Origin: Fimbriosthenelais zetlandica
Taxonomy: Eukaryota
DNA: 64,000 bases
Direction: 5' to 3'
NCBI GenBank assembly: GCA_977030845.1
Contig: OZ365118.1
Coordinates: forward strand, 4,216,001-4,280,000
Below, piece by piece: positions 53,740-59,800 of this stretch (the first letter of the stretch is position 1; each line of letters begins with the position of its first letter). Below the pieces are notes generated by a model. That model was not told the DNA's origin, did no database searches, and saw nothing but the letters and a program-made list of their open reading frames with translations. Position numbers and translations under genes: made by a program.

Positions 53740-53811
53740 TCAAGCTACATGTCCTCGCCTCTCATTGCTTGCTAACTCTTCTTTGATGAGGTTTGCCAAT
53801 CTCTCTAAGCC
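53740..53811 (-). CDS. AADAT: AADAT terminal exon 13 (72 nt incl. stop): [23 protein letters not shown]
   Basis: Strong acceptor tatttcttctttctttcAG, phase 0, peptide matches the C-terminal helix (human AFQVLAQLIKESL); lies 3624 bp past exon 12, beyond the nested plus-strand ORF. Confidence 0.9.
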   Translation of the reverse strand, partial: GLERLANLIKEELASNERRGHVA

Positions 53812-56800
53812 CTGAAAGAAAGAAGAAATATATTATAAATCCAAAGTCATAAGGCAAAAATACATGAGGAAAAGAAGATACCTCTTGATACACAAATCGG
53901 TTATTAAATATAATGGTGTGGGATGAAGGGATTTTCAGTGTAATTATTGGTAAGGAAATCTTTGTGTTAGACAATAGGTGTTTACAGTGTTAGACAATAG
54001 GTGTTTACAGTGTTAGACAATAGGTGTTTACAGTGTTAGACAATAGGTGTTTACAGTGGAAACCAACAGATCAGAGCAATAATAGCCCGTGACATAACCA
54101 GGTAATATTCATCTGACGCTAATTAAGCTTTGTTGTACCATTCATGTTACAACAACCGATTCATAACCCATTGTAATCTATGAGGAAATGAGAAATGAGC
54201 CTAGTAGGTGATAAATACTATCATATAGGCTGGGGGAGGGGGGGGGGGCAGTTGTAGGCTTGGGTATAAGTATATTGTTGTGTTTGTGCCATCTGATCAG
54301 TAATTCATATCCACACAGGAAAAATTCACTGAATTAATTATATCCCCTTCAACAAAAACATAGGGGTATGGTCAATTCCTGGGGTGGTCAAGATGGGATA
54401 GACAATGGTGTGTCTTGTGCTAACATGAATCAGTTATATTTTACTGGTCTTCATTATATTTCCATTGTTTAAAGAAGGCCTACCATGTCCAATATATAAC
54501 CAGGATTCACACCATTTCTCGTGCCTCACTCAGGGCTTAAATTAATTAATTTTACATCTAAATCTAAAAACTGTGGGTTTCAAGCCGTGAAAGATGAAGA
54601 CTTTAATCGTGTTTTTGCTTCCAGGTGTGAGACTGATGAGGAGCGATGGTAGGAGGACGGGACGTTCACTTCCTGCACCTGGATCCAGGGGCTGACGGTG
54701 GTGGGCTGGTGGATTACAACAAGAACTTCACGCCACCAGACGGTGACAGTGAGCTGCTCAGTAATGGGAGCAGCTTACTGGACAATACGACTCGCCTGGT
54801 GGGACCTTCGCACAGCACACGTACCGTACATGCTCATAAATCAGCCGTTCACCCTCAGTACGGCAGCTTCTACAGTGAATACGACCCCATGACGGGCGCC
54901 CGCACCGCCGCCATTTTAGGTTCTCTCCTCATGATGTTAGTCCTCTATATCATCTATAAAGCTAAATGTCACCAAGAATGGACGGAGGAAGATGATTATT
55001 ACCTCCAGCAGTATAAAAACCGCCAGGCTCAGAAAACCATGAAGCCAGCGCCCAGGAGGAGTGTTAACTATATAATAGACCCAGTCTGCCACCCTGATCC
55101 GCACATTCTTGCCGCCACCGCACAATGGGTGAAGATGCAGCCGTTAGAAACTGCGGTCCCCGAGCCGTTACCTGGAGAAAAACGGCGGCCACGGTACCCG
55201 CTATCACGGATACCCAGTGTCAGTGCGGAGAATATTAACAGACAGATGATGCACTTCTCCCCGTTTATTCCTAATGGTCACGGACCGCCTCCTGACGGGG
55301 AAGACATTCAGAGATCGTGTAATGAATATGTACCTAATGGTTACTTAAAGAACGTACATAAAGACTGTCTCCAGCACAGTGAGTGGGTGGAGAGTGAGAC
55401 GCATGAGGCCGCCTCTCACTACGACCCTACACGTCTCGACCCAGGTGATGACATCTTCCTGGAGTTTGGTAGTTATAGTAGACGACAGAGTGCGTATCGC
55501 GGGGGCGACTCCACGGATCAGAATAACGACAGGGATATATTCATCAATGTCGAAGTGAAACCCGAGAAACCATTACTTCAACAATGTTCAAGTATAGACC
55601 GTGATAATAATAATCATAATGATAACAGTACACTGCTTCAGTCTAGTAATGTCTTCACTCTCGATGTTTGTACTAATTGTATGTCAGATAAGAATCTGAG
55701 TGGGAATCGGTACCCCCACCCCCACCACCACCACCATCAGAGACCATCTATGATGCTTCCCGCGGACCCCGACCTCCCGGTGGTCAGGCGACCGCCGCAC
55801 CGCTCCAGATCACGACCGCGGGGCAAACAGCGGTCCATGGAGACGACGGGGTCTAGTCTGGGGAGCAGCAGTCAGCAGCAGTCAATAGACGATGACAGTC
55901 CTGTGTTCTGTGTTAGTTCACTCCCGGTCCGGGACGCCGCCCCGGGTTCCTTAGATATTAATGATTTATCATCTAATGAGAATTCCTCAGATCAACAGCT
56001 CCCCACCTCAGCCAATGCTCGGGTCCCTGTTCTTTCATATTTCAATAATCTAGTGAACAACTCGACTTTTTCTACCATGAGCACAGCCACTGCATCGTCC
56101 AACGGATCCTACCAGTCGGAGAGCGCGGATATTGCACTCACTGAACTCACTCCCTCTGTCACACCAGAGGTCACCACTGCTGTTATTGCTACCGAGCAAC
56201 AACCCAAACATGTCGTGGAGGTTACCATAGAAACGGCCCTTACGAGCAGCTCTAAGTCCAATGACGAAAAGGACACTAAGTTGTGAATGTCGTCTGTCAT
56301 GTGATGCAATGTTTTAACCATGGAGAGATTGGGAGGGAGAGTGGGAGGGAGATTGGGAGAGTGGGAGGGAGAGACTTGGTATCTATGTGTATATAGTGTG
56401 ACGTCAGTCAGGCACAGTGTCTCCACCTGGTGGTATCTGAGTGAATCATTTCTTTTTTCTTCCATCATGTTTTTTCCATGTTTTCCCCCCAGCACTTTCC
56501 CCCAGTAGTTCGTCCTTTAGTCTCATAATAGTTTCACTATGAAATGTGAGGAATTCCTTTAGTTTTTTACAGGACCATTTCAATTCCATTTCCACTAGTA
56601 GTTTGACGGGGTTATAATGACAGGAATCTAAACATAATAGATGGAAATCCGAATCTAGGTGGCACATCCAGCCCTAACTATGACAAATATTGTCAATATT
56701 TCCCTTGGAGATCTAGAAGGTATAGAAAACTATTCTGACTGAACAAATTCATCCATAGAACGTTAGCCTACAACCATGTCATTCTATAGGTCTACTACCT

Positions 56801-59800
56801 CAACACAATAAAGACTTCAGGATAAATTAATGATAGGGAATATTAGATCTAAGGTCTCAACATTAGGCAAAACAGTTGCATCAAAGGCATAACTGTACCT
56901 CCCCAAAAGGGTATTTCTCCTGTTCAGAGATTCTGTATATATATTATACACCAAGAAACCCAGAAAATGCTGACAAACTATTTGGCGGTGCTAAATACTT
57001 AACAGAATTACCCGGTTCAGTCTTTGTTATATTTTAAATTGATTCCTAAATGAATGGTAGGATTTTTTGAGTTGAACGTTTTGCAATATTTGCAAAGTTC
57101 AATTTTGATTCTCGGAGCATTAACTGTCTTCTTATTGTGATATGAATATATATGACTTCATGTTTAATAAATCTTTTGATAAAGAAAACAGCTTCAGATG
57201 TATGTGTTCTCTTTCTTTACAAACATTTTCATTAATACCTTTCACCCTAATTTAGTACAGGAACCATATTTGATATTGCCTAAACGTATAAAGTAAAACA
57301 AAGTTGTCTGTTACCCAAGTACGTACCTAAAAATTGTGCTTTCGCACAGCTCAGAAATACCTTTAAATAGAAAAAACTCCTCTAAAAATATATCTTGCCT
57401 AACAAAATTAAAAAGGAATATATGTGTTCACTTACCTTATCCATCTGTTCAGGGGAAGCCAGTGAGAATGATGCGCGGACATAGGGACAGGGGGAGTCAG
57501 GGTCGGGCATGAAGGCGCATCCAGGCACGAGAAGAACCTGGTGAGAAAACATGGAACTAGTGAATAAGACATGCAAGAAACAGCTGCATCACCCAGGAGG
57601 AAAAGTGTGTGAAACCAGAAATGTAACAAAAGCATAATTTACATAAAATATTCATGTAAAATTCATATAATTCCTTCATTAAAAAAATAGAAACAATTGC
57701 AAAATAGAAGGTGCCTGTAATTCAGGGCAATGAAAGGACCCCCATATAATAAAGGAGTCCATGAATTTTGATATACCAATTAATTTATGTAGCTTCAATA
57801 GAACTATAGTTCACCTGGTCATTGTTTATGTGTAAGGTCAATATGCAGGTGCATACACGCATGATATAGTTCATGCTCTTACCACTATGTGGCGCTTTTA
57901 TTCAACCACTATCATTTTATTCTGAGCATCAAAGAAACTCATCTATTACATCTTATCACGCAAGGCTTTACTCAAATTATCCCTCCGGGAATGTTCGATA
58001 TGCCTACTCCTAACAACTCACAGGTTTTAGGGCAAAGAATATGTTTGAATCTTGTATTTTCCTCCCCTTTAGATGGAGCCTACACCGTGGGGAGGATCTG
58101 TGAGACAGAGACCCATATAAAGGTTGGAGTAAGACTGATTATAAATGCCCGGATGAACCTTGGTGGTCCGGGGTGCAGGCTTCAAACCTGTAGCTGACTG
58201 ACGTCAGAGTGGTTCAATTCCACCTTTCGGGCGTTTTTAATTTTAGATTTGATAGAAAATTTTAAACTAAATCAAAAACTATTGGTAAAAAATATATGGT
58301 AAACTAATTCTACGACTGAATATATTGAAATATTAATGGTATATTTTTGTGCAAATATTCCAAGAATTTAACATATTAGAGGATAGGCTATAACATGGGA
58401 CATTTTTGTGTGTATAAAATAAATTATGAGATAACAAACAGGTGATTTAAATATAAATTATTTACCTCTTTTTCCAGGGCTTTCTTTTCTATGAGATCTT
58501 TAGTGTCGTCGATGCCACAGAGTTTCATCCAAAGAAACATTCCTGCCACAGGTTCATTCCATTCAGCTAGGCCTGGAGAGGAGATGAAACAACATTAAAA
58601 TACCAATAATTCATAGTAAAACCAATAAATATTACTATCAGAAATATGAAGGTAAAATAGAGGAGTTATTGTAACATTTCTCACCTTTTAACCATTTATT
58701 AGAATAATGGATCATTTCGTCTTTCTGTTCCTTGTAGAATTGGACTACCCTGGGGGACAAATAAATTTTATTAGTGTATAAATATTATAAGTGTATAAAT
58801 TAAAGTATAAATTGAGGAGATAAGAGCTATGTTTGTCATAAATTTGATGACAATCACAATGCACCTGTCCCATTATCATGATATAGAACCATGCTGGTAC
58901 CAAGTACATCATTTACAGCTTGTAGTTCCACGAAATTAAATGAAAAATGAACACATATATAACTTACTGCTTCACGTGGCTCTTAAATCCATCAAGTCCC
59001 CAGTGATGAAGCACTTCACTTATCAGTACCTGATAAAGACAAAAATTAAAAATATATTATATCAAAATATAATCAATAGTATTAATTATAAGGCTTTATA
59101 AGTAAAAATTGCGTCTAATACTATATTTTTATAACTTATAAAAGACATTAATTTCAAGTTTCTTCTCCGTTTATTGAAGACCTTTTGGTAAATTATCTTG
59201 TAATAATGAATGTGTATAGGTACCTGTGACATTGTGCTGGCCTGCATGGCTGACACCATCTGATGCATGATAACTCGCTGAACGAGCGGCTGAGGTCCCG
59301 TCACGAATCCAAACCGTAACCTGCAACGTAACATCAGTTAATTATAGATCTAATCTATACAAGGTATATTTATAATTGAAAAATATTCAGTAACATCTAA
59401 ATTATTTAATGAATTTAACTGCAAGACTATAGACATAATTCTGAAAGGAATTTTCTGGACGAAATTTAGTTGATTCAGTTTAGAAATATAAAATGTGATT
59501 CTCACCCTGAGGAAATGACTTTAGAGAATGAATCGTAACGAAGCACTCGTCCATCCACGTCCATAGATAGGAAACTAGGGGCAGGGCTCTAAAAAAAAGG
59601 TGAGAAATACTTAATAGACATTAAAAAAGGTCGGGAACTGATATCTACAAACAGAGGCTTGTCTAAAAACAGTCGCTTATCAGGAGTACCATAGATTAGA
59701 GGTCTACTTACATCAGTATACTGGAGGTAGTAGTAAGGATCATCTTCCATGATCAACATGTCATATTTCTGGGCGATCTGACAAGAAATAAAATCATTAA

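Follow-up and report, generated by a model that had tools for sequence, protein, structure and literature searches.

It is very probable that the last, phase-0 intron of the AADAT gene of Fimbriosthenelais zetlandica houses an independent gene on the opposite strand, a membrane-protein gene with its coding sequence (CDS) in a single exon, and that host and guest form a genuine nested pair inherited together since ancient times. AADAT encodes kynurenine/alpha-aminoadipate aminotransferase and lies on the minus strand of the stretch of DNA analyzed here, which comprises 64,000 nucleotides (nt) of contig OZ365118.1 (assembly GCA_977030845.1, positions 4,216,001 to 4,280,000 of the forward strand) and is called the window; positions are those of the window unless another sequence is named. 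The pair is made up of the following features, including the 5′ and 3′ untranslated regions (UTRs) of the guest.

53740–62005, minus strand: coding region of AADAT, mapped by tblastn and a rebuilt GT-AG model.
57436–57537, minus strand: AADAT exon 12, 34 codons, phase 0 at both ends, recognized by a PDB match and the donor AAG/gt.
53812–57435, minus strand: AADAT last intron, 3,624 nt, which houses the guest gene in the rebuilt GT-AG model.
53740–53811, minus strand: AADAT terminal coding exon, 23 amino acids and TGA, placed by C-terminal alignment and profile.
54646–56286, plus strand: complete guest CDS, 546 amino acids, a predicted single-pass membrane protein, supported by the open reading frame (ORF), conservation, and hydrophobicity.
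54625–54645, plus strand: start of the guest coding exon, with the acceptor ttccag/G at 54624/54625 and a 21-nt stretch of 5′ UTR that has stop codons in every frame.
56287–57190, plus strand: candidate guest 3′ UTR with AATAAA at 56807–56812 and 57166–57171, from a poly(A) signal scan.

Thirteen coding pieces of AADAT, from the Met codon at 62005 to the stop at 53740, were mapped by tblastn with the full-length AADAT of Lineus longissimus (XP_064636608) as the query, and the splice sites were refined against the Lingula and Lineus AADAT proteins. The rebuilt gene is intact, with 13 exons, GT-AG ends at every intron, and a product of 435 amino acids. The similarity of this product to KAT II/AADAT is full-length, the C-terminus included; its identity is highest with Lingula (60.7%), followed by Lineus (56%), and reaches 54–58% with marsupial AADAT and 44% with amphioxus. 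The Lineus orthologue carries PF00155 (class I aminotransferase), and the rebuilt protein holds an SFSK motif, which we take to be the pyridoxal phosphate-lysine site. The introns measure, in order, 500, 273, 185, 375, 241, 123, 185, 194, 218, 112, 928, and 3,624 nt, so the lengths put forward in the original prediction, 3,624 bp for the last intron as against 112–928 bp for the others, are exact in this model. A poly(A) signal scan of the AADAT strand located AATAAA at 52953–52948, and the AADAT 3′ UTR probably extends to approximately 52930.

Exon 12 (57537–57436) matches human KAT II chains (PDB 2QLR/2R2N and related) over residues 379–411 of 425 (E 9e-8), and approximately 14 further residues are therefore expected after it. 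Its donor, AAG/gtaagt at 57436, has an identical position in the loci L001, L002, and L015 and is conserved in five species. The terminal exon at 53811–53740 is preceded by the acceptor tttcag in phase 0 and encodes 23 amino acids before TGA. Once joined to exon 12, it gives a gap-free alignment with the C-termini of 12 full-length AADATs (for instance, GFERLSLLIKEEI in Lineus and AFQRLAELIKESL in a marsupial) and provides the AADAT C-terminal helix motif, in which 9 of 13 residues are identical to Lineus. A profile of the AADAT C-terminus scores 30 at 53811, while no other site in 50000–64000 scores 12 or more, which argues against a terminal exon nearer to exon 12; the original prediction had named such an exon as the result that would speak against it, and none was found. 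A PDB search with the 23-amino-acid terminal exon alone returned no match, the query being too short, and in L015 a BLAST alignment that ran past exon 12 into the intron was discarded as spurious, the donor there being conserved. The predicted end of exon 12 at 57436 and the predicted terminal exon were thus borne out by the KAT II match, the C-terminal alignment, and the profile score, and the 57436–53811 splice junction would be the one used in AADAT mRNA.

The guest ORF lies on the plus strand between AADAT exon 13 and exon 12. Upstream of it, a polypyrimidine tract with an AG end at 54624 is followed by TGA codons in the frame of the ORF at 54628 and 54637; no reading frame stays open from 54625 to the ATG, so any upstream exons hold only 5′ UTR and the entire guest CDS is contained in one exon. 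An acceptor shortly upstream of the ATG was present in all seven species examined. The earlier claim that a whole protein-coding exon is nested antisense in the last intron holds, that exon being the complete guest CDS, and the 546-amino-acid ORF and its candidate poly(A) signals were likewise located inside the intron, with both plus-strand AATAAA signals (56807 and 57166) preceding AADAT exon 12. At 57163–57171, the second of these signals (plus strand, 57166–57171) stands back to back with ATTAAA on the minus strand (57168–57163), so the guest transcript and a shortened AADAT transcript could terminate at one and the same site. The last intron also contains a perfect 23-nt tandem repeat at 53964–54058 (4.1 copies, 100% match), approximately 150 nt from the acceptor of the AADAT terminal exon and upstream of the guest acceptor, and a G-run at approximately 54233–54249; this region could be promoter-proximal sequence of the guest.

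The closest relative offers a view of the guest transcript. It is represented by the genomic contigs L003 and L013 and by a third contig, L012, which is intron-less, and their coding sequences are nearly identical (synonymous divergence, dS, 0.012). L012 leaves the L003/L013 genomic sequence exactly at cag/GTGTGGGG and continues upstream into at least 651 nt of other sequence. A spliced mRNA, or a copy made from such an mRNA, would have this appearance, and the switch point shows use of the acceptor homologous to 54625 in the closest relative. The L012 leader (1–651) has a CT-rich 5′ end, and a 164-codon open frame runs along its reverse strand. Neither the window nor any other locus examined resembles the leader, and the first exon of the guest was not placed.

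The guest ORF is single-copy in the 447-Mb assembly. Against its relatives, it shows 75 and 55% amino-acid identity over aligned codons, with a ratio of nonsynonymous to synonymous substitution rates (dN/dS) of 0.09–0.16 at saturated synonymous sites, and the noncoding DNA around it has no detectable similarity to those relatives. The chance of a 546-codon open frame is (61/64)^546, or approximately 4e-12 per start. The ORF is under strong purifying selection (dN/dS approximately 0.09) and, judged by its sequence conservation, is a real, functional gene. The alternative that it is a chance frame, a pseudogene, or a transposon remnant could draw on the low-complexity sequence and on the lack of a Pfam family and of a named homologue described below; it is effectively refuted by the constraint on the coding sequence, the single-copy state, the spliced transcript-like contig of the closest relative, the annotation of a homologue as a gene in Lineus, and a membrane-spanning core common to three phyla.

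The guest protein has one hydrophobic segment at residues 85–106 or thereabouts (coded by 54898–54963) and no signal-like segment at its N-terminus, and it is predicted to cross the membrane once. Three N-x-S/T sites precede the hydrophobic segment, and the tail is rich in Ser, Pro, Asp, and Asn. Much of the protein is of low complexity and looks disordered, while the membrane-spanning core of the family is conserved across the three phyla; the family motif reads YDP-x-x-G ... Y-K-x-K-C. Pfam gave no match at E up to 1 for any of seven family members, and no named homologue was found among 5.8 billion proteins. Profile searches with two alignments (A1 and A2) gave an identical set of four proteins, with the Lineus member missing, the search being insensitive for this low-complexity family. 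TMIE (PF16038), suggested by a protein-atlas feature score of 0.89 with 147–155 shared features, was rejected since these values fall below the guide values and no Pfam match exists; the other atlas leads were rejected likewise. The window guest, its three relatives, the protein P0004, and the Lineus homologue all end in T-x-L, which may serve as a PDZ ligand. Not every family member has this motif, since the guest ends in HKV in Lingula and in NNE in the L015 lineage. So far, the family appears only in the group of the window species, a nemertean, and a brachiopod.

The same arrangement was recovered in other genomes. In two relatives (L001 and L002), AADAT exon 12 lies on the opposite strand 1.9–2.1 kb downstream of a guest homologue, with exons 11, 10, and onward beyond it; the overlapping contigs L015 and L016, from a further lineage, place a guest homologue at a distance of 4.6 kb from exon 12, which is again antisense to it and has an identical donor. 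In the nemertean L. longissimus, AADAT exons 1–12 occupy 10001–16635 of L008 and the terminal exon lies at approximately 49950–50010, leaving a last intron of approximately 33.3 kb. Within it, an annotated single-exon antisense CDS of 460 amino acids (18926–20308) is the guest homologue (tblastn E 6e-10 to 3e-12), sharing the core of YDP-x-TG, membrane segment, and Y-K-K-K-C, as well as ATAEW-x-x-QPL and the C-terminal T-x-L. Similarly, in the brachiopod Lingula anatina, exon 12 (L011, 21030–21134) and the terminal exon (approximately 79408–79461) are separated by an intron of approximately 58 kb that includes assembly gaps. This intron holds two antisense open frames of 519 codons (512 amino acids from the first ATG) that match the family profile at E 4e-19 and are absent from the genes listed for the L011 record. 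The two copies, at 36577–38136 and 43147–44706 on the minus strand, are 99% identical and 6.5 kb apart, with a single-N gap between them at 39017, and may represent a true tandem duplication or an assembly duplicate. The guest CDS and the AADAT terminal exon are approximately 30–35 kb apart in both Lineus and Lingula.

Beyond these lineages, the intron was found without the guest. Amphioxus AADAT has 13 coding exons, as in the window, and its homologous intron measures approximately 0.7 kb; the crayfish Procambarus has a C-terminal intron of 2.2 kb at about the same place. Neither intron contains a match to the guest family. In the sea spider Pycnogonum litorale, AADAT is intronless (432 amino acids in one exon, L010, 5001–6299), which suggests that a retrogene replaced AADAT in that lineage. 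The question posed in the original prediction, whether the nesting is conserved in other bilaterians, thus received a divided answer: it is conserved in Lineus and Lingula and is lacking in amphioxus, the crayfish, and the sea spider. The Lineus and Lingula flanks and the rest of their last introns gave no tblastx match to the 64-kb window at E 1e-5 or better; only the host/guest pair stayed together. The pairing very probably dates at least to the common ancestor of the window, nemertean, and brachiopod lineages.

AADAT introns also hold other antisense genes. Two more are annotated in Lingula: a gene for a RING-finger protein in an earlier intron (L011, 15767–16951, minus strand) and, in the last intron, a gene for a membrane protein of 222 amino acids (L011, 74472–75140, minus strand) with a weak Ig-like Pfam match (E 0.075). 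Counterparts of these two are absent from the window. In the window, a selenocysteine transfer RNA gene (tRNA-SeC, anticodon TCA) was called by ARAGORN at 58147–58233 on the plus strand, antisense in AADAT intron 11, which at 928 nt is the second-longest. The AADAT loci of L001, L002, Lineus, Lingula, and amphioxus yielded no tRNA, which makes this guest lineage-specific.

If the pair is organized as described, the polymerase transcribing AADAT would have to cross the guest gene to reach the 23-codon terminal exon. The original prediction stated that full AADAT transcripts read antisense through the guest, and this follows from the structure for any transcript that reaches the terminal exon. 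Splicing from 57436 to 53811 would then remove the guest sequence from the AADAT RNA together with the intron, and the mature coding regions of the two genes would share no sequence. The guest would be transcribed from its own promoter, with an upstream 5′ UTR exon spliced onto 54625, and its transcript would end at the AATAAA at 56807 or 57166. The survival of the pair could be explained by structural entrapment inside an essential host gene, since no rearrangement could pull host and guest apart without breaking AADAT between exons 12 and 13. Entrapment is the most likely and most economical reason for the retention of the pair, and it fits the finding that host and guest stayed linked whereas conservation did not extend to the flanking genes. 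The two units could interfere with each other in a cell that expresses both, but the data can be explained without such interference.

Several points weigh against this account. Full nesting was demonstrated in three species only, with adjacency in three more. In L001, L002, and their extensions L006 and L007, no AADAT terminal exon was found within 15–18 kb by peptide scan, blastn, tblastx, or the C-terminus profile (no score above 12, as against 30 in the window), which may be explained by terminal exons as remote as those seen in the annotated genomes, with last introns of 33–58 kb. The 57436–53811 junction, the promoter, first exon, and poly(A) site of the guest in the window, and entrapment as the cause of retention are all inferred. 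A processed retrocopy would yield the same L012 contig, yet it would also imply a spliced mRNA. The opposite reading denies the nesting: AADAT would end close to exon 12, the match at 53811–53740 would be due to chance, and the two genes would be convergent neighbors. This reading is nonetheless very improbable. It gains something from the short open tail produced by reading through the exon 12 donor (17 codons, with a stop at 57384–57382), but this tail is not conserved in L001 and L002, human KAT II runs 14 residues past the exon 12 match, the donor is conserved in five species, the 53811 exon combines the C-terminal helix motif with a good acceptor and phase 0, and the annotated Lineus and Lingula AADAT proteins use equally remote terminal exons.

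A different question is whether the guest is strictly nested or interleaved with its host, with its promoter or 5′ UTR exon(s) below 53740 or overlapping the AADAT terminal exon; the last exon of AADAT would then lie inside the first intron of the guest, or the two mRNAs would overlap antisense in the AADAT 3′ UTR. This carries some weight but is on balance unlikely. The gap between the terminal exon (53811) and the acceptor at 54625 is just 813 nt, the leader of the closest relative is at least 651 nt long, and a plus-strand search of 52000–54600 for donor-like sites with 7 or more of 8 consensus positions found none. However, the leader length need not be kept in the compact window genome, the reverse complement of the L012 leader encodes no AADAT C-terminus, and the long distance between guest CDS and terminal exon in Lineus and Lingula makes an intronic promoter likelier there. 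Somewhat less probable is that the pair has been kept for mutual regulation, whether by antisense interference and exclusive expression or by guest activity that ends AADAT early and leaves an enzyme without its last 23 residues. Retention of the pair despite the loss of flanking synteny, the interference inferred for Drosophila nested pairs (PMC5174743), the intronic polyadenylation of the host reported at H13/Mcts2 (PMC13309782), and the back-to-back poly(A) signals would all fit such regulation. Against it, expression divergence is absent from the nested pairs of mammals (PMC8467205), whose members can be active together in single cells (PMC11694760), the tail after the exon 12 donor is not conserved between species, and entrapment accounts for the retention without any coupling. 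A more specific version, which we regard as quite improbable, holds that the guest arose in or was captured by the last AADAT intron in the lophotrochozoan stem and was co-inherited for more than half a billion years through functional coupling, for example, with guest transcription deciding whether the AADAT polymerase gets as far as the terminal exon, and hence whether the complete enzyme or one cut short after exon 12 is made.

Nested genes are common, host/guest pairs kept across phyla are few, and synapsin/TIMP is the textbook case. The AADAT/guest arrangement is a real, very old nested pair of this well-known kind and not a new kind of system. No literature joining AADAT with the term "nested gene" was found. 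In Drosophila, nested pairs show expression divergence, which was attributed to interference (PMC5174743). Mammalian nested pairs, in contrast, show no such divergence (PMC8467205), and single-cell data revealed their co-expression together with more host isoforms (PMC11694760). The interference or mutually exclusive expression that the original prediction took to be implied does not follow from nesting alone, and the published surveys disagree. An active intronic gene can nonetheless alter the RNA processing or expression of its host, as was studied experimentally for C. elegans opposite-nested pairs and for H13/Mcts2 (PMC12274878; PMC13309782). In those systems the effects were measured, whereas the AADAT pair is known here from sequence alone.

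In mammals, approximately 75% of nested genes are confined to one intron, with a preference for the largest; 5′ introns are favored, and the opposite orientation is slightly overrepresented (PMC11694760). The AADAT guest resembles the mammalian and Drosophila pairs in that its CDS lies wholly within the longest intron of its host; it differs from the mammalian ones in occupying the 3′-most intron and in a configuration that spans phyla. Between mouse and human, approximately 25–31% of the pairs with orthologues in both species keep the nested configuration (PMC11694760). The nearest precedent for such deep conservation is TIMP, which lies reversed in a synapsin intron and is reported to have been kept across most animals, from the cnidarian Nematostella to human (PMC2825198, citing Pohar et al. 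1999). As described there, the likeness to the AADAT pair is that of a reversed protein-coding gene in one intron of an unrelated host, kept across phyla. Synapsin and TIMP are, however, both named families with a range reported from cnidarian to human, whereas the AADAT pair was seen only in lophotrochozoan lineages, is absent from amphioxus, the crayfish, and the sea spider, has a guest family without a name, and uses the last intron of its host.

It is this deep conservation, and not the common nested arrangement, that gives the AADAT pair its value. For annotation, the last AADAT intron can reach 33–58 kb, and gene predictors may truncate the gene at this point. The analysis also flags a conserved family of membrane proteins that is without a name, annotated in Lineus and not among the genes listed for Lingula. 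A pair that has outlasted its reshuffled neighbors, set beside the empty intron of amphioxus and the crayfish, makes a clean natural system in which to ask whether old nestings are trapped or used.

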